IMG/VR virus record: IMGVR_UViG_3300035698_018317
Coordinates: 124,001 to 188,000 of that record
DNA: 64,000 bases
Strand: one strand, 5' to 3'
Shown here piece by piece: positions 1-57,041 of this stretch (the stretch's first letter is position 1; every line of letters starts with the position of its first letter). The notes under the pieces were generated by a model that was not told where the DNA came from, did no database searches, and was given only the letters and a program-made list of their open reading frames with translations. The position numbers were made by a program, and so were the translations under genes.

Positions 1-580
1 TCTTGCCTTTTTTCATGTCTTTGTCAACCTTGTCCATCTTATCCATCTTATCTTCTTTAGAATCGGCCTTCTTGTCGTCCTTCTTATCGTCTTTTTTATC
101 GTCTTTCTTGGCTTTACCCTTTTTAGCGGACTTGCCACCTTTTTTCATGCCTTTTTTCTGCATTTCTAGGGCATCGCCTGAATCGTCATCAGAATCAATT
201 TCTGTTTCAGTTTCTTCTTCCTCGTCACCATCACCATCTTTTTTGATAACAGTTGTTTCTTCTTCTGAATCTTCCGAATCTTTTTCGGCATCTTCATCAG
301 CGTCCGGGTCTGCGTCTTTTACGGCGGTGGGGTCAACGATTTCACCGTCATCTTCGCCATCTTCGCTTTCACCATCTTCTTTTGGGATATCGACATCGCC
401 ATCCATCTTCTTTTTGAGTTTCTTTTTGGCTTCGTCTAATTTTGTTTTTAGCTTATCAAGCATTTCATCTTCGGTTGGCATATTGCTAACTAGCCCAATG
501 TTTTGAGGATTAGAAATACCCAAAGCATGAGTGACACCAACAGATTCGTTCATCAACTTCCAATTTTTATAAGAAAGCAT
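1..580 (-). CDS. Acidic then Lys-rich head scaffold/internal protein, runs off the window start (missed by ORF track)
   Basis: Manual translation MLSYKNWKLMNESVGVTHALG...LDEAKKKLKKKMDGDVD..., D/E-rich then KDDK repeats; GGAG SD at 587-590; the + strand Ser/Phe-rich ORF 3..506 is its shadow. Confidence 0.65.
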   Translation of the reverse strand, partial: MLSYKNWKLMNESVGVTHALGISNPQNIGLVSNMPTEDEMLDKLKTKLDEAKKKLKKKMDGDVDIPKEDGESEDGEDDGEIVDPTAVKDADPDADEDAEKDSEDSEEETTVIKKDGDGDEEEETETEIDSDDDSGDALEMQKKGMKKGGKSAKKGKAKKDDKKDDKKDDKKADSKEDKMDKMDKVDKDMKKGK

Positions 581-648
581 TTTTATCTCCTATTTTTTTT
601 AACGGTCCATAAAGGCCGACAACTTTTCTAACCTATATAGATTAGTTA

Positions 649-861
649 TTATAATTTTCCGAATTTCTTAAGTATTTGTTCTCTTCTTTTACGTTCTACA
701 TCTCTGCGTTTTCTATTTCGGCTTGAATTATTAATAGGAGTTGACCTGCTAGCACTTAAAATGGTATTACCTCTGCCTCTGCCGCTTCTGCCGCTACTAG
801 CGCTTTTTACGCTTCCGATTCTTTTTCTGGCACCGCCGCCTTTATTACATCCGCAACCCAT
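649..861 (-). CDS. Small basic Cys/Arg-rich protein (MGCGCNK...)
   Basis: ORF track; AGGAGG SD upstream. Confidence 0.6.
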   Translation of the reverse strand: MGCGCNKGGGARKRIGSVKSASSGRSGRGRGNTILSASRSTPINNSSRNRKRRDVERKRREQILKKFGKL

Positions 862-941
862 ATTTTCCTCCTACGATTTTTAGAAAGTCTAGTTCCAGTT
901 CGTGACTTCCTTTTCTTTTTATTTTTTCTTCCACAGCACAT
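807..941 (-). CDS. 44-aa basic peptide MCCGRKNKKKRKSRTGTRLSKNRRRKIWVAD...
   Basis: Manual translation; ATG preceded by CATATATT motif just after a terminator; overlaps next gene by 55 nt. Confidence 0.4.
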   Translation of the reverse strand: MCCGRKNKKKRKSRTGTRLSKNRRRKIWVADVIKAAVPEKESEA

Positions 942-962
942 AATATATGTAGTGATGTTAAA

Positions 963-991
963 TAAAAAAAACGCCCTCAAAAGAGGGCGTT
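963..991 (-). terminator. Intrinsic terminator
   Basis: AACGCCCTC-AAAA-GAGGGCGTT hairpin with U-tract on minus strand, after ORF 1017..1703. Confidence 0.8.
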
Positions 992-1016
992 AGTTTGAAG
1001 GCACGACTACGACGAT

Positions 1017-1703
1017 TTAACGATACATATTGTCCGGTATAAATCCTCTACTATCATCGAATGTGAATTTCTTATTACTTTCATAGCCGCCACAATCTTT
1101 CAGTGTGGGGATAAGAAATCTCTTGTTGGTAGGTCTATATCGCTCTTGAGAGAACTTCTCAACGGCTGTTTCAAATTTATGGTAGAATTTTCCCATTTTA
1201 ATAGATGTAATGTGATGAGGAAGATTCAAACACAAAATCTGGTTCTGAATGGTTTTTAATACCTCAGACGCTCTAACCTTTTTACGCCCTTTACCAACTT
1301 TACTAAAGTCAATAAACCACAAGAAAGAATCAGGGTCATACGTAAAAACAGGATTTTGAATTCCTGCGTCCCAATGACTATCAATAATATCCGTTATTTC
1401 AGATAGCCAAAGATTACGTTTTACTACAGAAACGTATTTTGCGTAATAATAATAAGCAAAGACGCTTCTGAAACTCATAATCAAGATATGCTTGTTTGCT
1501 TTCGTGTGCATATTATGACGGAGACAGAATGGACAATAGAAACGTTGGCCTGATAAACGCTCACACCACTTCCTTATCATAGGCAGCATTCCTACTTGTT
1601 TGCCACAAAAGCAACAAGAGTAATGAATGTGTTCTGACAATTCATCGGACTCGTTTTCTATTTCTTGTAATTGTATATTTTGACGGTCTATGGTTGTGCT
1701 CAT
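1017..1703 (-). CDS. Hypothetical protein with N-terminal Zn-finger (CCFC...CPFC)
   Basis: ORF track; two Cys pairs. Confidence 0.7.
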   Translation of the reverse strand: MSTTIDRQNIQLQEIENESDELSEHIHYSCCFCGKQVGMLPMIRKWCERLSGQRFYCPFCLRHNMHTKANKHILIMSFRSVFAYYYYAKYVSVVKRNLWLSEITDIIDSHWDAGIQNPVFTYDPDSFLWFIDFSKVGKGRKKVRASEVLKTIQNQILCLNLPHHITSIKMGKFYHKFETAVEKFSQERYRPTNKRFLIPTLKDCGGYESNKKFTFDDSRGFIPDNMYR

Positions 1704-1783
1704 TTTTTACACCAAAAAAAAATAAGTTTTTGTTCTACGCTCTCTATATAAGTTTGAACTATAGTTAGCAGTAGAGGATAATT

Positions 1784-2005
1784 ATGAAAACATTCTATCA
1801 ATGGGCTGAAGAAAATAAAATAGAGCTTCCCGTAATAACGACTGACGGTGAGGATGCCACGAGCGAAAACAGAGTCAGGACTGGTTATAGTGCAAACTAT
1901 CCACCTGCCTATGTTGCTGCTCAATATCCTCATCATTACTTCAATCCTGCCAAGGCCACAGCAGACCTTGATGCGGAACAAATGAAGAAAAAAGATAAGA
2001 AGTAA
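1784..2005 (+). CDS. Small putative head-internal protein (MKTFYQWAEE; Lys-rich C-terminus)
   Basis: GAGG SD; N-terminus resembles T4 capsid-targeting sequence. Confidence 0.65.
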   Translation: MKTFYQWAEENKIELPVITTDGEDATSENRVRTGYSANYPPAYVAAQYPHHYFNPAKATADLDAEQMKKKDKK

Positions 2006-2030
2006 GCTCTAAGAATATAAACTTCTAGAC

Positions 2031-2065
2031 AACAAGCCTGCATTTTGCGGGCTTGTTTTGTTTCT
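2031..2065. terminator. Intrinsic terminator between convergent genes
   Basis: AACAAGCCTGCA-TTT-TGCGGGCTTGTT followed by T-rich tract. Confidence 0.75.
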
Positions 2066-5860: not shown

Positions 5861-5870
5861 AGGTTCTAAA

Positions 5871-6596: not shown

Positions 6597-6608
6597 TGTC
6601 CTTAAGAT

Positions 6609-7412: not shown

Positions 7413-8125
7413 AAATTTATCATGGAACATCTCATTTAATAGCTCGTAGGGCTGCTTCTTTTGGATTAGTCCCTCAAGGTTTAAAAGGCAAAATGGGGCA
7501 ATTTAGCTCTCATCCAAACATGGCTTACCTTACAACAACATATGCTTTGCATTTTGCTTGTGTACCTTTAAATGGGGTTACACACATATCCCCTGAAGAA
7601 TCTAAAATTGCCGTAATAGAAATAGAAACAGATAAATTAGATAAAGAAAAACTATATCCAGATGAAAATTTCATTTGTGAAATTGTAAGAAGGCAAAACC
7701 CATTGCCTCCAACAGAAAATCACGAAAAAACACTTCATTCATATGTAAGGGCAAATTTGGATAGGTATCAAGGGTTTTGGTCAGAGTCTTTACAAATGTT
7801 GGGAAATATTTGCTATAAAGGCTTAGTTCCTGTTGATGCAATCACTCGATATGTTATGTTTGATTTATCAAAAAATAATGACTTGATGAATTTAGACCCT
7901 ATCACTTGCACAACAAATAATGCAATTGTTGGACAGTTCTATAAACAATTTATAGCTTGGTTATTTGATGAAGTCAGAGAGTTGCCACATGTTAAAGAAG
8001 CAATAGATATTCTTTCTCACATAGAAGATAAACAATCAGACATGGCAATTCATTTTAAAAAACAAATAGAATTATTCAAAAAGTTACAAAGAAAAAGAGA
8101 TGGAATAAAAATCATTAATCTATGA
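7409..8125 (+). CDS. ADP-ribosyltransferase-fold protein (YHGT type)
   Basis: IYHGT...AYLTT...VIEI...LYPDE pattern. Confidence 0.5.
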   Translation: MKIYHGTSHLIARRAASFGLVPQGLKGKMGQFSSHPNMAYLTTTYALHFACVPLNGVTHISPEESKIAVIEIETDKLDKEKLYPDENFICEIVRRQNPLPPTENHEKTLHSYVRANLDRYQGFWSESLQMLGNICYKGLVPVDAITRYVMFDLSKNNDLMNLDPITCTTNNAIVGQFYKQFIAWLFDEVRELPHVKEAIDILSHIEDKQSDMAIHFKKQIELFKKLQRKRDGIKIINL

Positions 8126-9218
8126 TTTTCTTTTTCTTCTTTTTCTTTTTGCCATATTTTTTATCTGTTTTATCGCCTTTGATTTTGACTTTGTGCATAG
8201 AAAAATTTTGAGGTCTATGTGCAGGGTCTTGGTCAGCATATAAGTCAACGCCCCACCCACCGCTTTCTTTTATGTTTGACTCAGACGCAACACGAAATCC
8301 TGCTTCGCTTCCACCTTTATGAGGTCTTTTTGCGTGGGCATCAACATCTATGAAATGTTGATACCTTTTGTTGTAATAATCTTGACCTAATTCGCCAGAA
8401 GAAGACCTTTCCAAAGCCTGTTTAACTTCATCTGGTGTCCATGTGGATTTTGTTTGTGGGTTTATTCTAGAGAATAAAGCATTAACATCAAACCCTTTTT
8501 TTCTCATTGTAGTTAACGTGCGTCTTCCGGCGACACCGTTCTGAATGACTTTTGATATTTCATTACGAATAAAACTTATTCTTCCTTTTTGAGTGTGTAC
8601 TATGGGATTTTTCCAATTCAACAAAATTCTTTCATTTATTTTTTTCCATAATTCACTATATCTACTTGGCTCCGACCACCACAACATGTTTGGATATAAA
8701 ACAGAATTCTTATTTGCATTAGAAAAAGAATATTCCATGATTTTTTGAACTTGTTGTTCTATTTCATTTTTAGATGTTTCGTAATTACTCCTGCCTGTGA
8801 CTGCCTTTTTAGATGTTTCCGTAGGTTCGATATCATCTCTTCTAGACATTTGTTTATTTGGAGAGAAGAACACAACATCCGGCTGCATGTTTTTAGGAAC
8901 TACTGTTTTCCCTCTTCCTGCTGGTCTATATTCTGGGTCTGATTGTTTTAATTTTTTAATAATACTATTAGCGGTAAATTTGGACATGGGTGTAAAATAA
9001 GGAATAGTTTTATTTGAATCATTAATTCCTCTTAAATCATATCCAAGCGATTTAAGCTTTTTAACGACTTCTCTCATTCCAGTATTTACTAGATAAGATT
9101 TAGGACCAACTCTGCCTGAAGATATATTTACTGATTGTATATCATCCCAACCAGCTTTTATCCTGCCATTAGCAGGATTAACTGCTTGGAATAAAAAATC
9201 ATTATATCTCATTTTCAA
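8115..9218 (-). CDS. Hypothetical basic protein with poly-Lys C-terminus
   Basis: ORF track. Confidence 0.75.
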   Translation of the reverse strand: MKMRYNDFLFQAVNPANGRIKAGWDDIQSVNISSGRVGPKSYLVNTGMREVVKKLKSLGYDLRGINDSNKTIPYFTPMSKFTANSIIKKLKQSDPEYRPAGRGKTVVPKNMQPDVVFFSPNKQMSRRDDIEPTETSKKAVTGRSNYETSKNEIEQQVQKIMEYSFSNANKNSVLYPNMLWWSEPSRYSELWKKINERILLNWKNPIVHTQKGRISFIRNEISKVIQNGVAGRRTLTTMRKKGFDVNALFSRINPQTKSTWTPDEVKQALERSSSGELGQDYYNKRYQHFIDVDAHAKRPHKGGSEAGFRVASESNIKESGGWGVDLYADQDPAHRPQNFSMHKVKIKGDKTDKKYGKKKKKKKKIID

Positions 9219-9282: not shown

Positions 9283-9522
9283 TCATGCTGTCTCCTCACA
9301 ATTAATACTTTTTATACTATCACTGCCATCCCCATCCCATCCAAATGTTTTCATACTTGGAGATTTAGGGTCTACTACAATACTAAAAGAATGTCCACAA
9401 TTTCCATTGGTTTTTATGTAATTTAGCAAATCTTCAAGAGTATTATCTTGGTCATTACATTTTATAACTATGGTTTTGACTTTACTACTGCCTTCATTAA
9501 AATATTGTTCAAATGTTTTCAT
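9283..9522 (-). CDS. Small putative head-internal protein (MKTFEQYFNE)
   Basis: Capsid-targeting-like N-terminus. Confidence 0.7.
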   Translation of the reverse strand: MKTFEQYFNEGSSKVKTIVIKCNDQDNTLEDLLNYIKTNGNCGHSFSIVVDPKSPSMKTFGWDGDGSDSIKSINCEETA

Positions 9523-9525: not shown

Positions 9526-9801
9526 TTATCCCTGATTCATTTTGGCCACAGGTTCCATACATTTTCTGCAAATATAAACAGCCGTTGCAGTACTGTCATG
9601 GGGCCAAGAGCTATTTTTTTTATTTTTATGTAAATCACACACAAAATCTTTGGAAGATTTATCTTCTTTATTCACAAAGGCAATGTCAGCTTTGCCGCCA
9701 CATTTAGAACATTTAATTGTTTTGTCAAAGGGAGCTTGCCATGTCTTGTCAAGACCTTTTTCTCCAACATAAACAGTTTCTAGCCATTGACGAAAATGCA
9801 T
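9526..9801 (-). CDS. Small Zn-ribbon protein (MHFRQWLE)
   Basis: CSKC and CRKC pairs; capsid-targeting-like start. Confidence 0.7.
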   Translation of the reverse strand: MHFRQWLETVYVGEKGLDKTWQAPFDKTIKCSKCGGKADIAFVNKEDKSSKDFVCDLHKNKKNSSWPHDSTATAVYICRKCMEPVAKMNQG

Positions 9802-10313
9802 TATCTCTTCGGTCCTCTTTTAAGTGGCACAGGTTTTAATTTTTCTTGGTGTCTGTCTTTCTTATCTTTTAATTGATGCATCATGTTCCTTACATCGGCA
9901 GTTATTTCTGCTGCCGATGTACCATCACATTTTTTGCTAGTCTGAATAGAAACACTTCTTCTGTCTGAGTTGTAGAATCCTTTAGATAAAGTAAACTCTC
10001 CACCGTTCTTAGGCTCAAAGATAACTAATCCGCACCATTCTCCATCATCCCAATTGCGACTTGAAATCAAAATTCTAATTGGTTTGTGGTCAAAGACATG
10101 TTTGACGTGATAATCATTCTGCTTGAGAGCAGCACTAACATAGCCTAAAACTATCTTAGCGAATGAATCTAGACACTCATCCATCTTGCTACGATAGTTT
10201 ATTTCTATACTATAACGTGTTGCAGTAGTTGCTTCGTTAAAACGCTTTTTCCAGTCTTCTAGGCTGGTGTTACCGTCTATATCCAAAATGTCATGCCAAA
10301 TTTTAAATTCCAT
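9801..10313 (-). CDS. Hypothetical protein
   Basis: ORF track; TAATG coupling with next gene. Confidence 0.7.
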   Translation of the reverse strand: MEFKIWHDILDIDGNTSLEDWKKRFNEATTATRYSIEINYRSKMDECLDSFAKIVLGYVSAALKQNDYHVKHVFDHKPIRILISSRNWDDGEWCGLVIFEPKNGGEFTLSKGFYNSDRRSVSIQTSKKCDGTSAAEITADVRNMMHQLKDKKDRHQEKLKPVPLKRGPKR

Positions 10314-13482: not shown

Positions 13483-15990
13483 ATGATAAAACATTCATTC
13501 CGTTCTTTTGCTGAGCAAAGGTCATCTGGTAATTCTGTTAGACAGGCTGCTCAAGCTCAGGTAGTCCCTGTTGGTGGTTTTGTACCCGGACAAGGTGCTC
13601 ATTCAATTTTTAAAGAAGCATCGGTAAACACAAACTTAGTTCGTACTCCTAAAATGCCTATTTTGTTTGATGAGAACGATATTAAGTTTCTTTTACAGTT
13701 TCCTCCGGGTAAGTGGCCACCCGCTCTTCAATGGAGATATGGTGAAGGTTTAAGATATGCTGCTTTAGAAAGCAACAAATCAGGTGGTGCAGTACCAGAT
13801 ACAGGAACAATAACTTTGGCAGCAAAGGGTCGGGGCAAACCTATGACCTTCCAAAATGTCAATTTATATATGGGACCGTTATTGGAAAAACTAGGAAAGC
13901 CCGTGGAAGATGGAGGAGATTACGGATTTGATTTAACCCATTGGAAAGAAATTGGCATGGAAGCTAAAACAAGTAAAGGGGAAAAACGTCTTGTAACCCC
14001 GAACTACCTAGGCTTGCTTAAAAATACTGCCGCTGGCACTATAGGAGATTGGAAAATGGCAGTCCCTACTGGATTGTTAGGTAATCCAGAAGAAGGCTCA
14101 GTAATGGGAGTTCTTAAAGCCGCTGGAAAACCGCCAACAGGAGTAGGTTTTTTATATGATGGCACAATCGCAAACTATAAAGCGGCGGGTGGAATTGTCA
14201 AACCAATGTATTCTCAGGAACAAATTTCTGGGATGATAGATGCAAAAGTAGGAGCGGGTGGTGATGGGGCGGCTGTGGTAGATTATACTTACCAAATGGG
14301 TGATGAGACTTTTACTTCGCCAGAACAAGTAAGCACACTTATGCCGGGAAAAATGTTCAACCAAGGTCTGCTGCATAATTTTACATCTAGCAGAAAAATA
14401 TTACAAGCCCTTACTCAAAAAGCATTTGAAGCAAATCCAGAATTGATGTCAGAGCCGTCATTAAAACCAGAACAGATTGCAGAAAGTTTACCTAAAGGAA
14501 AGGTTTTGGAGTTTGGCCCAAAGAGAGTAGAAATACCTTATGATTCATTCATGGATGTATTTGGTCAATCTCGTGAAGAGTTACAAGCAGCAACAAGCAG
14601 CGAAATAAGTTTACAAGATTATAGGGCAGAAGAAAGAGCTACTGGAACGGGACCGTCAGTTAGTTCCGAGGGAAAATATAAGCCTAGTCAGATGACAAAA
14701 GGAGTAGAACCTGTAAGCAACGCTGATTTGGAACGACTTGGATATAGCCGAGCTAAATATGCGGCTCTTATAAATCAATATTTCGTAGCTATAAGTTCTC
14801 AGAACACAAATGTAAGAGGATTAGACGGAGAAGAAATACCCAGTTTAATATTAAAAGCAATAGATTATGGTATTGATACTGCCAAAAAACAGTACTTCTC
14901 ATTACATGCGCAACGACTTGAAGAAAATAAATCAATTATGTATATGAATGTAAGAGGTTTAATTAAGAAGCAAAATGGCAAAGGTCCGTTTTTGGATTTT
15001 GCAGAAGCTATTAAATCGGAAGATAGAAATGCTATTGATAAATCATATCAAGCAGCAAAAAGTCTCGTTACAGGCAGAACATCTAACTACGTAGCAGAAG
15101 TTGCTCAATTAGATTTAGGATATGGCACAAGAAGAAAACAAAGAAGAACAGGTGAGTTAGATGCCACCATGCAAAGTGGTCAAAGTAAATGGGGCATTAC
15201 GCAAGGTGTGGAAAGAAGTAGAGGGACCGAAGAAGAAGAACGTCAGATTAAGAGCGGAATAGATGACGGAGGTAAAATAACTTTTGCTTATCAAGCTGGC
15301 GAAATGTGGGATAAAGCAGGCAAAATCCAAAAAGATAAAGCCAAAGCAGATATAGAAGGTGGTGGCCTTTCGGCTATCGCCAGAGAATCACAATTAAGAC
15401 GAGATTTAGAAAAATTCTTCATGTCTCAATATGTTATCGAAAAGGATTTAGAGGCAAGCGAATACGACATGGGTGCAATTAAAAACTATGCTCGTACTAT
15501 GGCGAATAAAGTTCTGCAAGTAAAAGGTCTGACTTTAATTCAGCCATCCCCAGTTGATTCGTCTTCAGATGCAAAAGAGTGGTTGTCAAAAATAGCCAGT
15601 CTTCCAAAAACTATTGATGCTGTAAGGTTGGCTAAAAATAAACCTATGTTTGCCCCAAACTTTGGAGCAGGTGAAGATGAAGAACAACAACCGGAACGAC
15701 AAGCAACAGCACAACAGCAAATGCAAACTGCCCCAACACCACAAGTTGCTGCTGACGAAGATTTTAATTTACCGTCTGCTGATATGTTTAGACATCCAGA
15801 CGATGTAAAAGATTATATAAATGCCCCTGCGTTTACTCAAGGAGTTTCTTCTCAAGGTTTTATTAAAAAATTGATGACTAATCCTCAAGAAATACAAAAA
15901 GCTAAACAGCTTAACGCTGTATTGCAATCTAAAGCATTGGCAGCAGCAGTTGCTAAAGCTGAAGAGATGGGGCAAGCAGGAGCAGCATAA
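13483..15990 (+). CDS. 835-aa hypothetical, probable head-internal protein
   Basis: ORF track; starts MIKHSFRSFAEQ; GAGG SD. Confidence 0.8.
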   Translation: MIKHSFRSFAEQRSSGNSVRQAAQAQVVPVGGFVPGQGAHSIFKEASVNTNLVRTPKMPILFDENDIKFLLQFPPGKWPPALQWRYGEGLRYAALESNKSGGAVPDTGTITLAAKGRGKPMTFQNVNLYMGPLLEKLGKPVEDGGDYGFDLTHWKEIGMEAKTSKGEKRLVTPNYLGLLKNTAAGTIGDWKMAVPTGLLGNPEEGSVMGVLKAAGKPPTGVGFLYDGTIANYKAAGGIVKPMYSQEQISGMIDAKVGAGGDGAAVVDYTYQMGDETFTSPEQVSTLMPGKMFNQGLLHNFTSSRKILQALTQKAFEANPELMSEPSLKPEQIAESLPKGKVLEFGPKRVEIPYDSFMDVFGQSREELQAATSSEISLQDYRAEERATGTGPSVSSEGKYKPSQMTKGVEPVSNADLERLGYSRAKYAALINQYFVAISSQNTNVRGLDGEEIPSLILKAIDYGIDTAKKQYFSLHAQRLEENKSIMYMNVRGLIKKQNGKGPFLDFAEAIKSEDRNAIDKSYQAAKSLVTGRTSNYVAEVAQLDLGYGTRRKQRRTGELDATMQSGQSKWGITQGVERSRGTEEEERQIKSGIDDGGKITFAYQAGEMWDKAGKIQKDKAKADIEGGGLSAIARESQLRRDLEKFFMSQYVIEKDLEASEYDMGAIKNYARTMANKVLQVKGLTLIQPSPVDSSSDAKEWLSKIASLPKTIDAVRLAKNKPMFAPNFGAGEDEEQQPERQATAQQQMQTAPTPQVAADEDFNLPSADMFRHPDDVKDYINAPAFTQGVSSQGFIKKLMTNPQEIQKAKQLNAVLQSKALAAAVAKAEEMGQAGAA

Positions 15991-16139
15991 TGATAAGTTT
16001 CAAACAATGGTTAAACGAGATGGCAGGAGCGGGTGCTATTTATGATGGCACCAGTTCTCCTGACTTTAATTGGTGGGGTAGTCCTGAAATATATCATAAA
16101 AAAAAGAAAAAGAAGAAAAGTAAAAAGAAGAAAAAATGA
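15990..16139 (+). CDS. 49-aa protein MISFKQWLNEMAGAGAIYDG...KKKKKKKSKKKKK (missed by ORF track)
   Basis: Manual translation; TAATG overlap upstream and ATGA overlap downstream. Confidence 0.7.
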   Translation: MISFKQWLNEMAGAGAIYDGTSSPDFNWWGSPEIYHKKKKKKKSKKKKK

Positions 16140-17557: not shown

Positions 17558-18091
17558 ATGTTGCTTAACAATAATGGCACTCCATACGAATCTGCTGGAA
17601 GCATTCAGCAGTTCGACCCTGATAATACTGAGCATTGTTTATTTAATCTTTGGGACCAAGAATTAATAGAAATGGGTGGCTCACCTATTTTCTATTATGA
17701 AGTTTTTATCCAAGAAGGAAGTGTAGACCCAATTTATTGGGAAGACCGTGGTAAAATTTTCTCAAATAATCCAGTTGAACTTTATTGTCTTTATGAGCCA
17801 ATTTCTTCTACGAATGACCAAGGGGCATTTGGAATAGATTCTCCAGATGAGATGATATTTGAATTTAATTACCAAGCCGTATTAGACAATATAGGACATG
17901 CCCCAAAAATAGGCTCTCGCCTTTACACCCCACATCTACGAGAAAATTGGGTTATTGTTCAAAGAAATCTTGGTGAATTCAAATTATGGGGCACACTGCG
18001 ATTGACGATTATTGCTCAAAGATTCCAAGAGAGTACTACAACAGGAGAAGGAAACGTTACTCAGAAAGCACCCGATTTCAAAATCATCTAG
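17558..18091 (+). CDS. gp14: Head-closure protein, T4 gp14-like
   Basis: QELIEMGGSPIFYY...DPIYWED...FGIDSPDEMIF. Confidence 0.7.
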   Translation: MLLNNNGTPYESAGSIQQFDPDNTEHCLFNLWDQELIEMGGSPIFYYEVFIQEGSVDPIYWEDRGKIFSNNPVELYCLYEPISSTNDQGAFGIDSPDEMIFEFNYQAVLDNIGHAPKIGSRLYTPHLRENWVIVQRNLGEFKLWGTLRLTIIAQRFQESTTTGEGNVTQKAPDFKII

Positions 18092-18357
18092 TGTTCGCCT
18101 TCTATTTTCTTTAACTTAGTATAATATTTGGGATGTTCTCTTAAATGAGCAACGGCAATTTTCAATACTTTTATTGGGTCACCATCGACCACATCTGTAT
18201 CTTTTCCCATTTTGCCATCGTGTTCTTTTTCGACTTTCATGCCCATGGTTAACTCTTCGATAGAAAGTTTAGAAATATCTACATTTCCATCTTTGGCCAA
18301 CCGTTGCAACTTCTCTTTCTGTTGGTTTCCTTCTAACCAGATATTATATTCAAGCAT
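18088..18357 (-). CDS. DUF5661-like small protein
   Basis: MGMKVEKEH...KIAVAHLREHPKYYTKL; starts MLEYNIWLE. Confidence 0.7.
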   Translation of the reverse strand: MLEYNIWLEGNQQKEKLQRLAKDGNVDISKLSIEELTMGMKVEKEHDGKMGKDTDVVDGDPIKVLKIAVAHLREHPKYYTKLKKIEGEH

Positions 18358-31141: not shown

Positions 31142-31680
31142 TCTTGAGGTTGGACTGGGTTAGTCGGCGTTTGGGACAATTGTTGTTGTGGAGTAGCTTG
31201 AGGTTGTTCAACGCTCTGGACTCGTTGCATCATTTTTTCTAATTCGCCACTAAAGCTCATTATCGTGCCATCAAATTCATTTCCTAATCCAGCAGCCTGC
31301 AATTCTCTTCTTAATGTTTGTAGCCCTTGATTTATATTAGTTGCAGCCGTAAGAACTTGCTGTACAGATTGTTGCTGTTTTTGAGCGTTCTGTTGAGCCT
31401 GTGCTGTCTCGACGCCACCAGCGGTTTGTGTTTGCGCTACTGGTTGCGATGGTACTTCATTCCCTGTGGGTTCTGGCTGTGTTGCCACATCTTCTTGTTC
31501 TAAACTCAGTTGATTCATATTAATTCGTATATTTCGCTCACGACGAATAAGGTCATTAATTTTTTTTGAATTAGGGCCAGATTGCTTTTGTAATTGTTTT
31601 AGCTCTTTCCTAAGCTCTTCTAATTCTTGAGCAAGAGATTCTTTATTTCGTTGTTCAATATATTTATTAAATGTTCTCAT
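31138..31680 (-). CDS. Gln-rich coiled-coil putative head-internal protein (MRTFNKYIEQ)
   Basis: Capsid-targeting-like N-terminus. Confidence 0.75.
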   Translation of the reverse strand: MRTFNKYIEQRNKESLAQELEELRKELKQLQKQSGPNSKKINDLIRRERNIRINMNQLSLEQEDVATQPEPTGNEVPSQPVAQTQTAGGVETAQAQQNAQKQQQSVQQVLTAATNINQGLQTLRRELQAAGLGNEFDGTIMSFSGELEKMMQRVQSVEQPQATPQQQLSQTPTNPVQPQD

Positions 31681-31985
31681 TATTTATTTCCTAACAATAT
31701 CAATCCATCCCTCACTGGATGCCCAGCACGATTCCACAAGCTGAAAGCTTGCTCTGCTGACATATTCTGAGGATTTGTAGCTAATACTCTCTTTTTTATT
31801 TTAGAATAACGAATCCCATTTAGCACATCTTTAAAAAATAATAACATTGAACTACGATTATTCTTTTCCCCAAATAAATCAGAGTCAACATCAGTATCAG
31901 GTAAAGACCTCACATCGTCAATAAACCCTTGCACGACGGACTCGATTGATTCATCTTGTTCAGCATATTCACTAAATGTTCTCAT
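31680..31985 (-). CDS. Putative head-internal protein (MRTFSEYAEQ)
   Basis: Capsid-targeting-like N-terminus; CTAAATAA upstream. Confidence 0.75.
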   Translation of the reverse strand: MRTFSEYAEQDESIESVVQGFIDDVRSLPDTDVDSDLFGEKNNRSSMLLFFKDVLNGIRYSKIKKRVLATNPQNMSAEQAFSLWNRAGHPVRDGLILLGNK

Positions 31986-32034: not shown

Positions 32035-33321
32035 ATGGAATTTAAAAAGTGGATAAATTTATCCGAAGGTATTTTGGGGTATGTCATTGCAGCCTGTATC
32101 ACAGAAGGACGGAAAGCCCCAGAATCTCTTAGAGGTAGTGATTTTTCATCAACTTTATTTGACACAACTCCTAAATCCAAACAGATTTTAGGAGCGGATG
32201 CATGTCCAGTAAATCCTCTTAGTGGTTATGATACACACATTAAATCCATACAAAAATTTGCATTTTCAGGACCAGACCAGTTTGCCCAGACAATGCTTTT
32301 TTCTCCATTATCAGCAAATGTTCCATTTACAAAGCACTGGGATAATTTCCAAGTGCTTATGATGATATTGAAACATTATTTCCCAAACAAAGTAAACCCA
32401 CAAAAATTAGAATTTATAGTTGATGCATTTAATGATAAGTATCATGCAATGGCTCATACTATAGCTGGATTTAAATATAACACAATTGCTGACATATGGA
32501 ATAATAGAGAAAAATTATTCAACGAACTTCCCAAATTATCTAAAGAGGGAGATGATGAAAAGTTGATAAGAAGATTGTCTGAAATCCCCGGTGTCCAGTC
32601 TGTCAAAGCTGGATTTATTGCTCAATTGTTATTTGGTAAAGCAGGCTGTATAGACACTCACAATATAGATATTTATAGCAAAGTATTCCCAGATATGGCT
32701 GATGAGTTTGACGAAAAGAAGTGGAAGGGAAAAGATGGAGCTAAGAATTATGTTGCTTTGTTAAGAAAGTTGGAAAAAGAAAAGAAAGTAGGCAGCAAAC
32801 AATTGTGGGATATTTGGGTAGATTTTGTAGAGCATTTCTATCGTCTTGTATCAACGCATGGCGAGGGTATCTATGCTGATATGGGGTCTTCGTTGAATCC
32901 AGATGACCCAGTTTATCAAGCAATAAAAGAAAAAGAAATAAAAATCCCTAAAATAAAAATAGGTCAATCCACAAAAAGACAAGCTATGGTTCCGGTTGTT
33001 TCTGGTAAGCATGGTATGGGTGCTAGTGCAACTCATTTACAAGATGACCCTGATGAAATGCTAAGACAGTTCCAACGAATACAAAGAGGTGAGGAAGGCA
33101 GCATTGCTTCTAAAGCAGTTCCGTTCAGAGCGGGTTTACATGACCCATCAATTGGAATGGCAACACAACCATCTTCGCTACACTATTTTGGAAAAGCTCT
33201 TAGTGACAAGGGAGAAGTAGACCCAGATAGGATTAGAGACATCATAAATAGACGACAAAAGCGGGGCGGTAAAAAAGCGTGGGCCGCACGAAATGCAAAA
33301 CAACAAGGAAATCTTTTTTAA
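32035..33321 (+). CDS. Protein with HhH DNA-glycosylase-like core (start corrected to MEFKKWINLSE)
   Basis: LSEIPGVQSVKAGFIAQLLFGKAGCIDTHN; TAAATA motif before ATG 32035. Confidence 0.6.
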   Translation: MEFKKWINLSEGILGYVIAACITEGRKAPESLRGSDFSSTLFDTTPKSKQILGADACPVNPLSGYDTHIKSIQKFAFSGPDQFAQTMLFSPLSANVPFTKHWDNFQVLMMILKHYFPNKVNPQKLEFIVDAFNDKYHAMAHTIAGFKYNTIADIWNNREKLFNELPKLSKEGDDEKLIRRLSEIPGVQSVKAGFIAQLLFGKAGCIDTHNIDIYSKVFPDMADEFDEKKWKGKDGAKNYVALLRKLEKEKKVGSKQLWDIWVDFVEHFYRLVSTHGEGIYADMGSSLNPDDPVYQAIKEKEIKIPKIKIGQSTKRQAMVPVVSGKHGMGASATHLQDDPDEMLRQFQRIQRGEEGSIASKAVPFRAGLHDPSIGMATQPSSLHYFGKALSDKGEVDPDRIRDIINRRQKRGGKKAWAARNAKQQGNLF

Positions 33322-36146: not shown

Positions 36147-36689
36147 CTAAAATTGAGGAAATTGTTGAGGCGGTTGTGGTGCCTGTTGTTGATTTGGGTC
36201 CATCTGGGGCTGTTGTGGGGGCATTTGTGCCCCTTCTGGCGGTGGAGGCTGTTGTTGAGGCGGTTGTTGCTGTTGCGGCTGTTCTGGAGGAGATTCCCCT
36301 TGTGACGGGGGTAAAGCTTCATTTTCAGGAGGTGCTTCTTCTGGCGAGGCTAATGCATTTACAGGTGCCCCTACACTATCTGCTAATTTCTGTAATTCTT
36401 CTACTGATGCGGTCATAACCTCGCTCAAATCATCTTTTTCATCAATAGCCTTAGAAATGGCAACCCCTACTGTTTGTAGCGGGGCAAGATACTGAGTATC
36501 CTTCTTCGGCCAGTGCGTGTGAAGAATAGTACGTATTTGATTCACTATTTTTTCAGAAGCAGTGACTACTTGACGCTTACCCATTCCTTCACTGTTATCA
36601 AGTAAATTCTGCATAGCGTTAGTTAGGTCGCCTATCTTTTCATTTAAAAAAGATGCGTCTTCATTTAGTAAGTAGTCTCTGAATCTCAT
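36147..36689 (-). CDS. Putative head-internal protein, Pro/Gln-rich tail (MRFRDYLLNE)
   Basis: Capsid-targeting-like N-terminus. Confidence 0.75.
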   Translation of the reverse strand: MRFRDYLLNEDASFLNEKIGDLTNAMQNLLDNSEGMGKRQVVTASEKIVNQIRTILHTHWPKKDTQYLAPLQTVGVAISKAIDEKDDLSEVMTASVEELQKLADSVGAPVNALASPEEAPPENEALPPSQGESPPEQPQQQQPPQQQPPPPEGAQMPPQQPQMDPNQQQAPQPPQQFPQF

Positions 36690-45073: not shown

Positions 45074-45538
45074 CTACATCATTGGTGGGGGAGGGGCCGC
45101 AGCGGGGGGCATTCCCGGCTGTTGAGGCGGCTGTTGTTGTGGTTGAATTGGTGGTGGAGGTTGTTGTGGTTGTGGGGGTTGTTGTTGCTGTTGCATAGAA
45201 TCTACCATATTTGGGTCGGCTTCGCCAGCTTTTTCTTCTGGATTTACAGGTTTCCCTGAAAGTATTTTTTCTATTACTTCCCAAACGTTAGTAGCTTTGA
45301 ATTCTGCGGCTGGTTCTGGTTGTCCCGGTTGTGGTTGACCACCCATCGGGTCCATGCCGCCCATTGGAGGAGCACCGCCACCCATCGGGGGAGCACCACC
45401 ACCCATTGGAGGAGCACCACCCATTGGAGGGGCACCACCCATTGGGTCCATTCCACCGCCGCCCATTGGAGGAGCACCGCCGCCCATTGGAGGAGCTTGC
45501 GGGTCTTGTTCTATGATAAAATCTTCGAAAGTTTTCAT
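45074..45538 (-). CDS. Low-complexity putative head-internal protein (MKTFEDFIIEQ; PPMGG repeats)
   Basis: ORF track; capsid-targeting-like start. Confidence 0.75.
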   Translation of the reverse strand: MKTFEDFIIEQDPQAPPMGGGAPPMGGGGMDPMGGAPPMGGAPPMGGGAPPMGGGAPPMGGMDPMGGQPQPGQPEPAAEFKATNVWEVIEKILSGKPVNPEEKAGEADPNMVDSMQQQQQPPQPQQPPPPIQPQQQPPQQPGMPPAAAPPPPMM

Positions 45539-49122: not shown

Positions 49123-49344
49123 TTAAGATTCAAATTCTTTTTGAATCATCTCCATTACTTTGTTAAAATCTTTTTCACTAGTTGTTTTGGTTTGAACGTA
49201 TTCGGCAGCTTTATCTATAGTGAGACCGCCTGTGCGAATGCTATTTACCATCTTACTAGCTAATTTATTTAAATTTAATTCACCATAACCCCCAACAAGT
49301 GGTGGCATTAATCTTGATTCTAACCATGTGTTAAAAGTTTTCAT
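49123..49344 (-). CDS. Small putative head-internal protein (MKTFNTWLE), antisense within the tRNA cluster
   Basis: Start corrected to 49344; TAGATACA motif upstream. Confidence 0.65.
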   Translation of the reverse strand: MKTFNTWLESRLMPPLVGGYGELNLNKLASKMVNSIRTGGLTIDKAAEYVQTKTTSEKDFNKVMEMIQKEFES

Positions 49345-49517: not shown

Positions 49518-49522
49518 TCTCT

Positions 49523-49610: not shown

Positions 49611-49613
49611 TTT

Positions 49614-49702: not shown

Positions 49703-49760
49703 TTCGAATAAAAATATAAAAATTATTCGAACCTTTACTATTATATAGTGGAGGTAAAAA

Positions 49761-53818: not shown

Positions 53819-54364
53819 ATGAAATACAAGTGTTCAATATATAAAGAAGAGCCGGAACACTGCCGAGATTACCCATGGAACGAGGCAAATGACCTTTTTC
53901 CTAGTTGTATTTTCTACAATGCAGAAACAGACACAATAATTACAGAAGAAACAGTCTTGGAAACAAAAACAAAAGAAGAGCTTCAAGAATACTGCATTAG
54001 TTGTGGAAAATGTTGTTTTTATTGGGAAGATGGTAAACCAGTAATTCCTTGTTCGGCATTAGAAATCACAGAAGATGTAATAAGTGAGGAAGTGATAAGA
54101 GCCGAAATAAAGTCACAAAACTTGTCAGATGGGTCATTTATACAATGGAAATATGCAGATACAAAAATGTTAGTCGGTTATTTTGATGGCTTGCATTCTT
54201 TTCGTGCGACGTTTAACCCAGCCACTTTAGAGTGGGATGCGATGCGACGAATTACGGCTGACTTTGCAAAAATGAGTGGACATAAGATTCTTGCAGAAGC
54301 GATGGTTGCATGTGAGGTTGAAGCTTATCATAGGCAAAAAAGACGCTGTTTTATAATGAGCTAG
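53819..54364 (+). CDS. CxxCxxCC (YkgJ-like) Cys-cluster protein with permuted motif order
   Basis: CSIY..EP.HCRDYP precedes CISCGKCC; ACTATATT before ATG 53819. Confidence 0.6.
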   Translation: MKYKCSIYKEEPEHCRDYPWNEANDLFPSCIFYNAETDTIITEETVLETKTKEELQEYCISCGKCCFYWEDGKPVIPCSALEITEDVISEEVIRAEIKSQNLSDGSFIQWKYADTKMLVGYFDGLHSFRATFNPATLEWDAMRRITADFAKMSGHKILAEAMVACEVEAYHRQKRRCFIMS

Positions 54365-54908
54365 TTATCTCATCGACCATATGGCCTAGTTTTTCAACTG
54401 ACATTTTAAGTGATTCATTTCGGAAAGCATTTGTCATGTTTGGGAAATCTTGGACACTTTCTTCCATGGCAAGTGTCAACATAATTACAGCATCATAAGT
54501 GGCAATCGCAATGCTTCGAATTGGCTCTTCTTTTGTTTCTATGTTAGATTTTTTTTGTATTGCCGTGTCTCTTAGCTTCTTGGATGTCTGCCTGATACTT
54601 TCAACAGATTTTTCTTTATAAGGATGGTTTTCCCAAACTCGTGTTGTGTATAGTTCTTTAGAGTATTCTCGGATTACCTTTCGAATAATACCCATCTCTT
54701 CAGATATGTGCCCTAATTCGTATCGCAAACCATTATCACCTAATGCTTTTCCAAGAGACCCTAAAATACAATGAGCAGCTTCAGCAAAACTCTGAGCACC
54801 TATTTCGTATTCTGTATTTGACTCATAACCACCTGCGTCGGGTAAGCCGCCATATGCTTGCGTGGCGATAGGACATGCTTCTTGAATTAACCAATTTTTG
54901 AAGTTCAT
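54351..54908 (-). CDS. Putative head-internal protein (MNFKNWLIQE)
   Basis: Start corrected to 54908. Confidence 0.7.
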   Translation of the reverse strand: MNFKNWLIQEACPIATQAYGGLPDAGGYESNTEYEIGAQSFAEAAHCILGSLGKALGDNGLRYELGHISEEMGIIRKVIREYSKELYTTRVWENHPYKEKSVESIRQTSKKLRDTAIQKKSNIETKEEPIRSIAIATYDAVIMLTLAMEESVQDFPNMTNAFRNESLKMSVEKLGHMVDEITSSL

Positions 54909-55519: not shown

Positions 55520-55585
55520 TCTATCTTCACTTTCTCTCAGAAAAAGACTTTCATTTTTGGGTTTATGCCCTATAATGACAGTTCA

Positions 55586-55691
55586 GGCTGAATGACGGAA
55601 TTGGCAGACGTGCGAGCTTTTAGGGTTTGAAAACCCATTAAAAGGTGCTCGTGTCCTTCGGGGCGTGTGGGTTCGAATCCCTCTTTGGCCA
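55586..55691 (+). tRNA. trnL: Second tRNA-Leu body with 22-nt anticodon-loop insertion
   Basis: 29-nt loop at 55618-55646 between CGAGC/GCTCG. Confidence 0.8.
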
Positions 55692-55705
55692 GTAAGGAAA
55701 TTGTT

Positions 55706-56164
55706 ATGTGGCGTGAAGAATACGACGAATACGATGATGATGGCTATCCTTATTATTATCATGATGGCCTTGGTTGTCGTTGTTATAAATATGACAGACC
55801 TCCTTATAATAAAAATTATAACGTGCCGTCTCATATTCATATAATGAACAAGAATGAGGCGAAAGTAATGCGTCGTCTCAAAAATGAAACTGGTTTATCT
55901 GAAGAGGGTATTCGAAAGATTAAGAAATATCGAATTATGCTTTCTGAAGCTCAAAAAGAAGGGCAAAAAGCCAAACGGACAAGGGTGCAAAAAGCTAGAG
56001 ATGAAGTAATGAAATGCGTTTGTCGTAAGCTTAAATTAGCCAAAGAACATCCTGTTACACAGAAAGCATATCGTGAAGAATGGGAACGGCGGCGAAAGGA
56101 ATATGATAATCGTCCTTGTTGTAATAGTAGTATTTATCTAGAATCACCAAAGGATGATAGATAA
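55706..56164 (+). CDS. Hypothetical basic protein (start corrected to MWREE)
   Basis: AAGGA SD; track start lies inside the tRNA. Confidence 0.65.
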   Translation: MWREEYDEYDDDGYPYYYHDGLGCRCYKYDRPPYNKNYNVPSHIHIMNKNEAKVMRRLKNETGLSEEGIRKIKKYRIMLSEAQKEGQKAKRTRVQKARDEVMKCVCRKLKLAKEHPVTQKAYREEWERRRKEYDNRPCCNSSIYLESPKDDR

Positions 56165-56169
56165 AATCC

Positions 56170-56253
56170 AGCCTCGTGACGGAATTGGCAGACGTTCGGG
56201 ACTTAAAATCCCGTGCCCTTCGGGGCGTGTGGGTTCGAGTCCCACCGAGGCTA
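56170..56253 (+). tRNA. trnL: tRNA-Leu(TAA) copy 2
   Basis: CGGGA-CT TAA AA-TCCCG. Confidence 0.95.
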
Positions 56254-56267
56254 TTTAGAAATAATCA

Positions 56268-56351
56268 GGCCGAGTGACGGAACTGGCAGACGTGCGGGGT
56301 TCAAATTCCCGTGTCCGAAAGGGCGTGTGGGTTCGAGTCCCACCTCGGCCA
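56268..56351 (+). tRNA. trnL: tRNA-Leu(CAA)
   Basis: CGGGG-TT CAA AT-TCCCG. Confidence 0.95.
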
Positions 56352-56368
56352 GTATAAAGGTGATTAAA

Positions 56369-56647
56369 ATGACCTTACGAAGTGGAATAAAAATTATACA
56401 TCCTTCTATAAACGCTCCTGAGTTAGAAGAGACAACTTGTATCAAGTGTGGGGAAAATTTTCTTTCAGAAGACCGACGAAGAATTAGATATTGTTCAAAA
56501 TGCAGAAAGATTGTTAATTCTCCGTCACACAAATTAGGTATAGCATCAGAACATATAGATTATCGTAAAATTTTTAACCATCTGGAACCTCGCCAGATAC
56601 GACAAATGAAAATAAAAAGTCGTACAATTAGGCAATATCACTCATAG
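56369..56647 (+). CDS. Small Zn-ribbon protein (start corrected to MTLRS)
   Basis: AAGGTG SD; CIKC and CSKC. Confidence 0.65.
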   Translation: MTLRSGIKIIHPSINAPELEETTCIKCGENFLSEDRRRIRYCSKCRKIVNSPSHKLGIASEHIDYRKIFNHLEPRQIRQMKIKSRTIRQYHS

Positions 56648-57041
56648 ACTTATGTTTGAAAAGGAATCTATGCACATGTCTCATGAACTCTGGAAGTGTT
56701 GCTACTTTATCTACACGCAATGCTTCTGGAGTGAATGGTTGTGGTTTTCCCGGCATATCAGAAGAACGTCTGATAAACCCTGTAATCACAGAAGGAACTC
56801 CCTTATTGTTAGGTCTAATTACTACCACAACAATATTACCATTAGACCCATCTAAAGGGTCTGTTTGAGCATATTCTGGTAATTCTGCCACTTGGAGTGC
56901 CCATGAATTTTTATCATCATAAACATCTTTTGCGACATCTGCTAGTTGTTCAACTTGTTTGAGAATATCGGGCCAACGGGCTAATCGACTTCTTAATTGT
57001 TCAAGTGCGTGTTGTTTGACGTAACCTTTAAAAGTCTCCAT
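56628..57041 (-). CDS. Hypothetical protein
   Basis: GGAGG SD. Confidence 0.75.
   Translation of the reverse strand: METFKGYVKQHALEQLRSRLARWPDILKQVEQLADVAKDVYDDKNSWALQVAELPEYAQTDPLDGSNGNIVVVVIRPNNKGVPSVITGFIRRSSDMPGKPQPFTPEALRVDKVATLPEFMRHVHRFLFKHKSMSDIA

Follow-up and report, generated by a model that had tools for sequence, protein, structure and literature searches.

A greatly expanded N-terminal tag, probably a T4-type capsid-targeting sequence, in a ~500-kb phage of the T4 superfamily

The internal proteins IPI, IPII and IPIII of phage T4 are otherwise unrelated small proteins that share a capsid-targeting sequence (CTS; MKTYQEFIAE / MKTFKEF...), an N-terminal peptide of ~10 residues in which aromatics three apart are followed by a hydrophobic residue and Glu. 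The targeting determinants of the IPIII tag lie at residues 4 and 7 and those for processing at residues 8 and 10 (PMC9026906). At least 10 different Ips have been reported across related T-even phages, and the N-terminal signal is already accepted as a basis for listing the internal proteins of these phages (PMC12373910). T4 Alt, a packaged ADP-ribosyltransferase of 682 aa, is also trimmed by gp21 but has a propeptide of its own. In the giant myoviruses phiKZ and SPN3US a T4-related prohead protease cuts ejection proteins after Glu, although their propeptides are mostly at least 100 residues long and carry an A/S/G-x-E cleavage motif, processing is limited to 8 proteins, and a common short tag is absent. 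For SPN3US, ~50 head proteins have been reported, with many proteins packaged and ejected (PMC5694885). Injected anti-defence cargo is exemplified by polyvalent proteins and the phage P1 Dar proteins, in which enzymatic domains, ART-PolyVal among them, travel with the DNA (PMC7824862). Those domains are fused in one giant protein or loaded via DarA/Hdf, whereas in the phage described here each small protein has its own tag. Encapsulin cargo-loading peptides direct unrelated enzymes into an HK97-fold shell and are likewise short, portable and attached by a flexible linker, but they are usually C-terminal, have another motif and undergo no proteolytic removal, and no DNA is involved.

We analysed a window of 64,000 nucleotides from a 225-kb contig, which is a fragment of a ~500-kb uncultured phage; 307 genes were called on the contig by our own heuristic procedure, and the nearest GenBank records are uncultured phages of 485–642 kb. 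The contig carries T4-type head genes for the portal (gp20), the prohead protease (S77, gp21-type) and the capsid protein (gp23), together with a terminase, gp15 and a baseplate protein; the phage further encodes ClpP, a membrane-anchored AAA ATPase and a trypsin-like peptidase. The initial annotation held that about 15 unrelated genes in this window begin with a T4 CTS-like peptide. All 17 of the N-terminal peptides quoted there translate exactly at their coordinates, each being a start in our gene call, and the genes are indeed unrelated, as comparison of all pairs of tag-trimmed proteins by blastp gave no similarity at E < 1e-3.

The motif was searched with a loose regular expression, M-x(1-4)-[FY]-x-x-[WYF]-x(1-4)-E, and a strict one, M-x-x-[FY]-x-x-[WYF]-x(1-4)-E. 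The loose expression matched 14 of the 86 genes in the window (P = 3e-15) and 36 of 307 on the whole contig, where 2.8 were expected, while the strict one matched 22 cf. 0.7 expected. Genome-wide enrichment was confirmed by comparing gene starts with all other ATG-initiated open frames (loose matches at 35/281 ATG gene starts vs 24/3336 other ATGs with an open frame, binomial P = 1e-31). Tagged genes account for 12–15% of genes here (36–47 in 225 kb), or ~1 in 8; because the tag is both genome-wide and clade-wide, the estimate of about 15 was too low and the tag is not limited to the window. An aromatic pair was present at 45 gene starts in a test that did not assume Glu, and Glu followed within 1–4 residues in 36 of these (80%; 30% for the same pattern inside proteins; P = 7e-12). 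The second aromatic was followed by a hydrophobic residue in 78% at gene starts and 32% inside proteins. Both residues are therefore enriched independently of the regular expression. The second aromatic alternates between Trp, Tyr and Phe, with Trp commonest. Relative to Met1 the motif shifts by 1–3 residues and Glu falls at position 8–13, so that strict T4 numbering is valid for only 22 of the 36 genes. Tagged genes also cluster (11 adjacent pairs vs 4.1 expected, P = 0.0007), and it is in accessory regions that they do so.

Tagged starts at 1784, 13483, 15990 and 32035 are on the + strand and the remaining ones on the − strand, where each start coordinate marks the first start-codon base; scores are bits against a tag HMM, on which only 3 of 3300 decoys score as high as 8 bits and about one decoy per 307 genes scores 6 bits. 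The gene at 1..580 (−, start 580, MLSYKNWKLMNE, 14.0 bits) runs past the window edge (contig 123786–124580, 264 aa) and is low-complexity, acidic and basic, beyond its tag, of which MLSYKxWKx[LIV]NE-S is kept in 9 of 11 metagenome homologues. A 73-aa product is encoded at 1784..2005 (+, MKTFYQWAEE, 16.1 bits), with an orthologue in a 572-kb relative (55% identity) that starts MKTFLQWAED. The large gene at 13483..15990 (+, 835 aa, MIKHSFRSFAEQ, 7.9 bits) sits within a T4-like neck and tail gene block; searches of its product against Pfam and PHROG gave no match, and the N-terminal peptide of its counterpart in the relative is tag-like too. Directly behind it, 15990..16139 (+, MISFKQWLNE, 16.8 bits) encodes a 49-aa mini-protein composed of tag, short middle and poly-Lys tail, and the relative has an orthologue (MNFKKWLEM) in the same slot behind the large gene. 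Orthologues were likewise found there for 18088..18357 (−, 89 aa, MLEYNIWLE, 11.4 bits; 51% identity, MEFKTWIE) and 36147..36689 (−, 180 aa with a Pro/Gln-rich tail, MRFRDYLLNE, 14.5 bits; 47% identity, MLFKEFVLNE). Adjacent tagged genes at 31138..31680 (−, 180 aa, Gln-rich and coiled-coil-like, MRTFNKYIEQ, 14.8 bits) and 31680..31985 (−, 101 aa, MRTFSEYAEQ, 12.3 bits) are followed by 32035..33321 (+, 428 aa, MEFKKWINLSE, 14.0 bits). The protein from 45074..45538 (−, 154 aa, 12.3 bits) begins MKTFEDFIIEQ and continues with PPMGGG repeats; 49123..49344 (−, 73 aa, MKTFNTWLE, 15.3 bits) is flanked by opposite-strand tRNA genes, and 54351..54908 (−, 185 aa) starts MNFKNWLIQE (14.0 bits). Upstream GTG or TTG alternatives exist for the genes starting at 32035, 49344 and 54908, and in these genes it is the tag that favours the ATG.

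Tagged genes at 9283..9522 (−, 79 aa, MKTFEQYFNE, 13.2 bits) and 9526..9801 (−, 91 aa, MHFRQWLE, 12.6 bits) lie between two of the three cases that had been flagged as weaker: 8115..9212 (−, 365 aa, MRYNDFLFQ without Glu, a borderline 5.2 bits) and 9801..10313 (−, 170 aa, MEFKIWHDILD with Asp replacing Glu, 7.7 bits), the latter with CTAAATA 14 nt upstream. The third is 56628..57041 (−, 137 aa, METFKGYVKQ with Gln replacing Glu, 6.0 bits). Given the rate at which decoys reach 6 bits, these three are plausible but not secure; 8115..9212, which adjoins three tagged or tag-like genes, is helped by its poly-Lys C-terminal tail and by its place in a run of four such genes.

The tag was also found in relatives. 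The complete 572-kb genome has 42 tagged genes vs 9 expected (~4–5% of its genes), and a 194-kb T4-like phage has no regex-level excess (3 vs 2.5 expected). Twelve tagged genes have orthologues in the 572-kb relative at 29–61% overall identity, of which 8 match the expression and 4 have partial, tag-like starts as judged by eye. Among tag-bearing contigs, a class of our own making in which most members are small genome fragments, the S77 protease was encoded by 10 of 17 large and 9 of 21 smaller ones. Three metagenome protein families keep the tag, with some members that lack it beginning at the enzyme core: HAD_SAK_1 homologues have tag plus variable linker in 31 of 43 cases while at least 5 begin directly at the DxDxT core, and the family of the glycosylase-like product of 32035..33321 shows the same modularity, most full-length homologues being tagged down to 30% identity. 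Judging from these alignments, the tag is dispensable for the fold, yet it is kept in most members. AF2 models place it on a floppy extension (pLDDT ~53) outside cores with pLDDT > 90.

The conserved positions correspond to the T4 determinants, namely the aromatics (4 and 7), the hydrophobic residue (8) and Glu (10). An HMM built from the tags of this phage only scored T4 ipI, ipIII and ipII at 10.6, 9.0 and 8.9 bits, ranking them 1, 3 and 4 among 273 T4 ORFs. Moreover, in the major capsid protein residues 1–10 end in [FLV]-L-N-E (MNANARFLNE-A, cf. MEGNSRFLNE-A in the 572-kb relative), which is present in the N-terminus of the S77 protease too. The likeness to the T4 IPs extends to accessory, clustered, fast-evolving genes and to the gp21-type protease and gp23 capsid protein found in both. 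Differences are that Trp is the commonest second aromatic here, that spacing is variable, and that the predicted cargo includes sizeable enzymes and poly-Lys mini-proteins. T4 has three such genes, and the far greater number here counts against equating the two. Every sequence-level prediction of the capsid-targeting interpretation that was tested was borne out (head machinery, T4 determinant positions, HMM, portable add-on), and we put the probability that the shared N-terminus is a greatly expanded T4-type CTS at roughly 0.7.

That the tag reflects chance or start-codon choice has a negligible likelihood: three starts do need ATG to be preferred over GTG or TTG, but the comparison with all other ATG-initiated frames has already refuted this idea, and the tag was replicated in an independent genome and in searches of 5.8 billion and 1.8 billion proteins. 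A nucleic-acid feature, in which the peptide has no role and the conserved element is a translation-initiation or leaderless-mRNA need, or a mobile cassette of promoter and start codon that recombination has spread, could explain why many tags begin with the AT-rich ATG AAA ACA TTT and why a promoter-like CTA[AT]ATA lies within 24 nt of the ATG in 9/36 tagged vs 13/271 untagged genes. We consider it very improbable, as the second aromatic and the spacing vary, Phe and Glu codons are used about as elsewhere in the genome, the longest shared word is 13 nt at most, upstream regions resemble one another no more than those of untagged genes do, an ordinary Shine-Dalgarno sequence precedes half of tagged and untagged genes alike, and the peptide is kept in homologues at 30–50% identity and at loci from genomes of 24–57% GC. 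These comparisons indicate selection on the amino acids of the tag, not on the DNA. An inherited remnant or harmless shuffled exon-like piece without present function would fit the gathering of tagged genes in accessory regions and the two thirds of them without a homologue in the 572-kb relative; it is nonetheless improbable, since the aromatics, hydrophobic residue and Glu are conserved while linker and remainder diverge, and since the tag, though cleanly lost in some members, persists in most.

Alternatively, the common partner to which the tag docks or sorts proteins may not be the prohead core but, for example, a chaperone or AAA+ translocase of the phage, a protease adaptor by which degradation is timed, a hub for assembling RNA-repair enzymes or a phage-made compartment. 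A modular, amino-acid-conserved tag on a floppy linker fits any peptide-docking system, the phage has the ClpP, peptidase and AAA ATPase mentioned above, and several tagged enzymes share an RNA-repair theme (HAD_SAK_1, PolyA_pol, cREC and AAA_33 kinase). However, this would make a coincidence of the position-by-position match to an experimentally defined T4 tag alongside homologous head machinery; the capsid protein's own N-terminus also ends in L-N-E, and poly-Lys mini-proteins would be readily understood as head contents associated with DNA. We therefore regard such a partner as unlikely.

Under the capsid-targeting interpretation, by analogy with T4, an amphipathic M-[KR]-[TS]-F-[KR]-x-[WYF]-[LIV]-(x)-E on a flexible linker would head each of the unrelated proteins, the two aromatics would dock it onto the scaffolding core during prohead assembly, and the gp21-type S77 protease would cleave after Glu. 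No T4 gp55 or gp45 homologue was found when the phage was searched, and late co-expression of the tagged genes is thus without support. Domain searches assigned the tagged proteins a HAD_SAK_1 phosphatase, a CCA-type nucleotidyltransferase (PolyA_pol), cREC, an AAA_33 kinase and an ART-PolyVal ADP-ribosyltransferase. The last of these is a parallel to packaged Alt, both being ADP-ribosyltransferases with an N-terminal propeptide (here a putative one), but at 117 aa it is much smaller, is of a different ART family and bears an IP-type tag in place of Alt's propeptide; its distant homologues have an internal FKxWFGDSKVV at the corresponding place, so part of this 'tag' may belong to the domain itself. 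The product of 32035..33321 consists of tag, ~50 floppy residues and an HhH-GPD (Ogg2-like DNA glycosylase) fold (AF2 pLDDT 41–53 for residues 1–60 and > 90 afterwards; VIA-align to 3fhg, Z 13.6, rmsd 3.2 over 194/207 residues), and K191 and D207 are invariant in its family. Packaging of such tRNA and RNA repair enzymes is not known from any phage, which counts against the interpretation. Many low-complexity and poly-Lys proteins resemble effectors less than material that fills the head or binds DNA, and probably serve as DNA counter-ions or head filling. The 'anti-defence or takeover arsenal' of the initial annotation is an inference, and the cargo that could be identified is mixed. Given the near-identity of the tag to the T4 head-loading tag, a list of proteins that are probably injected along with the DNA can be drawn up from sequence. 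Once freed they would remain in the head beside the DNA and reach the host at infection, where the enzymes (phosphatase, nucleotidyltransferase, cREC, small ART-PolyVal and glycosylase-like protein) may provide a ready-made tool kit ahead of any gene expression.

All 17 N-terminal peptides listed in the initial annotation were found exactly in the window, each at a start picked by our own heuristic gene caller. We described this N-terminal tag by a loose regular expression, M-x(1-4)-[FY]-x-x-[WYF]-x(1-4)-E, and by a strict one in which the first spacer is fixed at two residues. Enrichment over non-start positions was computed across the whole contig and was pronounced: the loose expression matched 36 gene starts vs 2.8 expected from internal positions, and the strict expression 22 vs 0.7. 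Loose matches occurred at 12.5% of ATG gene starts compared to 0.7% of other ATGs with an open frame (P = 1e-31), and in the window alone 14 of 86 genes were tagged (P = 3e-15). A profile HMM made from the contig's tags brought the total to 41–47 genes (13–15% of contig genes), the extra HMM-only genes probably reflecting starts that were mis-set in our gene calling. Motif onset lay 2–6 residues from Met1 in all 36 tagged proteins. Since the expressions themselves demand Glu, this residue was examined on its own: in the 45 gene starts carrying the aromatic pair, Glu followed within 1–4 residues in 80% vs 30% internally (P = 7e-12), and a hydrophobic residue followed the second aromatic in 78% vs 32% internally. 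The resulting consensus was M-[KR]-[TS]-F-[KR]-x-[WYF]-[LIV]-(x)-E. Tagged genes were clustered (11 adjacent pairs vs 4.1 expected, P = 0.0007). Window genes for core replication and tail functions carried no tag, among them those for ribonucleotide reductase, an SMC/ABC-type ATPase, RNA ligase, sheath and tube.

A second common N-terminus, MG[AS]xT[TS]EGxGxG, was present on three proteins (window 30329–31141 (+) and 50350–51336 (+), and contig 91670–92059 (-)). Similarity was detectable just between the two window members and was confined to their first 50–58 residues.

The source is a bacteriophage for which the standard genetic code was sufficient and in which nothing resembling human sequence was encountered, represented by a single IMG/VR viral contig of 225,284 bp (36.8% GC; the window is its bases 124001–188000). 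CheckV placed its completeness at 44%, corresponding to a genome of ~500 kb, and 307 genes were called (92% coding). T4-type tail genes (tail sheath, a gp15-like sheath stabiliser and a baseplate protein) lay within the window. The head module was located on the contig outside the window and comprised the large terminase, gp20 portal (PF07230), S77 (gp21-type) prohead protease (contig 87508–88230; PF03420, 90 bits), a presumed scaffold assigned solely from its location between the protease and capsid genes, and the gp23-type major capsid protein (PF07068, 289 bits). The closest GenBank records were uncultured metagenomic phages of 485–642 kb, and the capsid protein was 78% identical to its counterpart in a 595-kb record. 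No cultured relative was found, and a near-identity DNA search against the phage collection gave no match.

Several other features of the contig were noted. The T4-type portal (833 aa; contig 81805–84306, or 5805–8306 of searched locus L006, outside the window) was interrupted by an intein splicing domain. Also outside the window, a trypsin-like peptidase gene adjoined the portal gene (contig 84335–85144), a ClpP homologue was encoded nearby (contig 96233–96790), and a membrane-anchored AAA ATPase gene adjoined the terminase gene (contig 77100–78488); BCS1-like ATPases have been speculated to transport folded proteins into jumbo-phage heads (PMC7824862). Between the portal and protease genes, at the site of the T4 core proteins gp67 and gp68, a 629-aa protein (contig 85600–87489) began with MKRKLISYDVFE, its version in the complete 572-kb relative G003 beginning with MKRKLIKFDAFE; this start held an aromatic-x-x-aromatic-Glu motif that was too far from Met1 for the regular expression. 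In the window, three tandem paralogues with 34–59% identity (22029–23863) directly followed the sheath gene, which is the expected tail tube position, and a single ORF (59936–61324) combined glycosyltransferase (DXD) and sulfotransferase domains. Eleven tRNA genes (five Ser, three Leu, two Tyr and one Phe) were found at window 47868–49703 and 56170–56351, and a tagged gene (49123–49344) lay between two tRNA genes on the opposite strand.

The T4 internal protein genes ipII and ipIII begin with MKTYQEFIAE and ipI with MKTFKEF. In IPIII, residues 4 and 7 are the main determinants of targeting and residues 8 and 10 those of processing (reviewed in PMC9026906); these positions correspond to the aromatic pair, the hydrophobic residue and the Glu that the contig tags conserve. 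The aromatics, Phe or Tyr followed by Trp, Tyr or Phe, fell exactly at 4 and 7 in 22 of 36 tags and were displaced by 1–2 residues in the others, and Glu occurred anywhere from 8 to 13. This variable spacing, both between Met1 and the motif and in where the Glu falls, is a caveat to a T4-type reading. The tag HMM, built from contig tags alone and reaching 8 bits in 3 of 3300 internal decoys, scored ipI at 10.6, ipIII at 9.0 and ipII at 8.9 bits, ranking them 1, 3 and 4 among 273 T4 ORFs in 82 kb. T4 gene 57B (MMEFKDFST...; 15953–16411 of T4 locus L140), which lies beside ipI, scored 9.9 bits, between the internal proteins. The capsid protein began with MNANARFLNE-A in the contig and MEGNSRFLNE-A in G003, so that in T4 numbering Phe is at 7, Leu at 8 and Glu at 10, an arrangement resembling the 10-residue propeptide of T4 gp24. 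VLNE-A was present in the N-terminus of the S77 protease itself. These N-termini suggest that [FLV]-L-N-E, with which many tags end, may be a cleavage site of this phage's S77 protease. A complex prediction for protease residues 45–240 with a 49-aa tagged protein (window 15990–16139 (+)) scored 0.02, below our mark, and carries no weight for or against the reading. A basic character like that of the T4 internal proteins was rejected as a general property, as mature tagged proteins had a median pI of 6.1 vs 6.0 for other genes.

The simplest account of the shared N-terminus, to which we assign a probability of about 0.7, is the T4 capsid-targeting system used at a much larger scale. By analogy with T4, tagged proteins would dock onto the prohead core, the tag would be cut after Glu by the prohead protease and the proteins would be injected into the host. 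A docking peptide that has some other function is an unlikely alternative to such targeting. Still less probable, even when taken jointly, are explanations at the level of nucleic acid or without any function. Upstream sequences were no more alike among tagged genes than among untagged ones, the first 33 coding bases had at most 13 identical bases in common, Phe and Glu codons in the tags were used roughly as genome-wide, the second aromatic varied among W, Y and F, and an ordinary Shine-Dalgarno sequence preceded half of the tagged genes, the same share as in untagged genes. The description of the tagged genes as unrelated was also borne out: after trimming of the tag, the proteins gave no mutual blastp match at E < 1e-3, and Pfam domains differed among all those that had one.

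Two other kinds of N-terminal signal were considered and rejected. Sec and Tat signals either open with a positive n-region and continue into a hydrophobic h-region of at least ~10 residues, or carry a twin-arginine motif. Direct inspection of the sequences showed tags that were amphipathic and charged, had Glu at 8–13 and lacked a hydrophobic core. The ejection-protein propeptides of phiKZ and SPN3US are ~100 residues or more in length and end in A/S/G-x-E (PMC5694885), whereas the tags spanned ~10 residues and usually had an aromatic or aliphatic residue two places before Glu.

A promoter-like element, CTA[AT]ATA, was observed 3–24 nt before the ATG of 9 of 36 tagged and 13 of 271 untagged genes (P = 2.6e-4), with window examples upstream of 10313, 32035, 45538 and 54908. 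It often left no space for a ribosome-binding site, and this placement suggests leaderless or near-leaderless mRNAs. An argument from late promoters was rejected and expression timing was not used as evidence, because the element was not clearly present in front of structural genes and tblastn with T4 gp55, gp45 and gp44 gave no match in the contig or in G003.

The tag behaved as a module. Among 43 metagenome homologues of the HAD_SAK_1 phosphatase, 31 carried the tag, followed by a linker variable in length and sequence and then the invariant DxDxT strand, and at least five had no tag and started at the DxDxT strand. A tagged 428-aa protein (window 32035–33321 (+)) had 273 relatives, and most of the full-length ones started with a tag, down to ~30% identity; with relatives of ~200 aa, alignment was limited to the core (residues 140–270). 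The family of the 264-aa protein starting at window 580 kept MLSYKxWKx[LIV]NE-S before an acidic/basic low-complexity body that recalls T4 core protein gp67. In AlphaFold models of the HAD_SAK_1 and 428-aa proteins, the tag had a pLDDT of ~53 and lay outside folded cores with pLDDT >90; no secondary structure was assigned to it in the former, and in the latter a low-confidence helix spanned residues 3–21.

PHROGs and Pfam searches of the tagged window proteins were almost all blank, so that family matches did not reveal function there, and the majority of all tagged proteins had no known family. Structure comparison, the sole basis of the assignment, matched the 428-aa protein to the HhH-GPD (Ogg2-like) fold (VIA-align Z 13.6, rmsd 3.2 Å over 194 of 207 residues; Foldseek probability 1.0 but E 0.018). 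A Lys191/Asp207 pair was invariant in this glycosylase-like family, for which a profile search against PDB sequences gave no match. Recognised cargo on the contig consisted of HAD_SAK_1, a PolyA_pol/CCA-type nucleotidyltransferase, cREC_REC and a 117-aa ART-PolyVal protein, and at other tagged IMG/VR loci of three more PolyA_pol proteins, an AAA_33 kinase, an LMW phosphatase, DUF6267 and GP88. The tag of the ART protein may be partly native to its domain, as distant homologues had an internal FKxWFGDSKVV in the same place. Several tagged proteins were tiny with poly-Lys ends, or contained Pro/Gly/Gln repeats; proteins with poly-Lys tails or PPMGGG or Gln-Pro repeats (window 15990–16139, 8115–9212 and 45074–45538; contig 92076–92213) are possibly DNA counter-ions or head filling. 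Overall, the cargo looks broader than anti-defence.

A degenerate DNA pattern for MKTFxxW[L]E retrieved 88 stretches in IMG/VR, mostly at ORF starts. Many of these loci had 3–5 tagged ORFs within a few kb, their GC ranged from 24 to 57%, and many of the contigs were fragments of ~500-kb genomes by CheckV. Of the contigs classed as tag-bearing, 10 of the 17 large ones and 9 of the 21 smaller ones yielded an S77 protease. In G003, the regular expression matched 42 starts vs 9 expected, and the HMM 32 vs 1.3 at ≥8 bits; in G014, a complete 194-kb T4-like phage, the expression was not enriched (3 vs 2.5) and the HMM gave a marginal excess at 6 bits (7 vs 1.7). G003 had orthologues of 12 of the 36 tagged genes (29–61% identity), eight of which matched the expression, the remaining four beginning with peptides that by eye were partial and tag-like. 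In several IMG/VR fragments tagged genes lay a few kb from the capsid gene, but we claim no significant linkage to the head module because the sample was small and included near-duplicates. A tagged 555-aa protein (loci L023 and L062) was not counted among tagged capsid proteins, its match to the capsid family being marginal (Pfam E 3.5e-5, PHROGs 2.6e-4) and its neighbours lysis genes.

Ip1–3 of T-even phages each inhibit type IV restriction enzymes, and T-even internal proteins have already been catalogued by their N-terminal signal (PMC12373910), which gives a precedent for the listing logic of the initial annotation. The tag and its use are known in T4 and close kin; what appears new is the scale, the clade and the cargo. 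Literature searches of incomplete coverage returned no description of the tag in huge phages, so novelty is unproven. We lean slightly towards a broader reading, in which a clade of ~500-kb uncultured phages marks 5–15% of its genes with the T4-type tag, as a general code for cargo, and each head would bring in a pre-made proteome that could be read from sequence alone. This proteome would combine a kit for tRNA and RNA repair with an ADP-ribosyltransferase and a DNA-glycosylase-like enzyme, and would add poly-Lys peptides that coat DNA as well as dozens of unknown proteins.

To our knowledge, huge phages of >500 kb are known almost solely from metagenomes. Should the tag act as it does in T4, it would provide a culture-free list, from sequence only, of the proteins delivered alongside their DNA. 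Some of this cargo would be unexpected, for instance RNA-repair enzymes with the potential to forestall defences that cut tRNAs. Out of hundreds of genes without known function, the tag list is a short list of candidate early-acting factors. If this account is true, the naturally varied tags would be usable for packaging proteins in engineered T4 capsids, and the known range of the T4 targeting code would extend well past T-even phages, into a remote branch of their superfamily and a tenfold larger cargo set.
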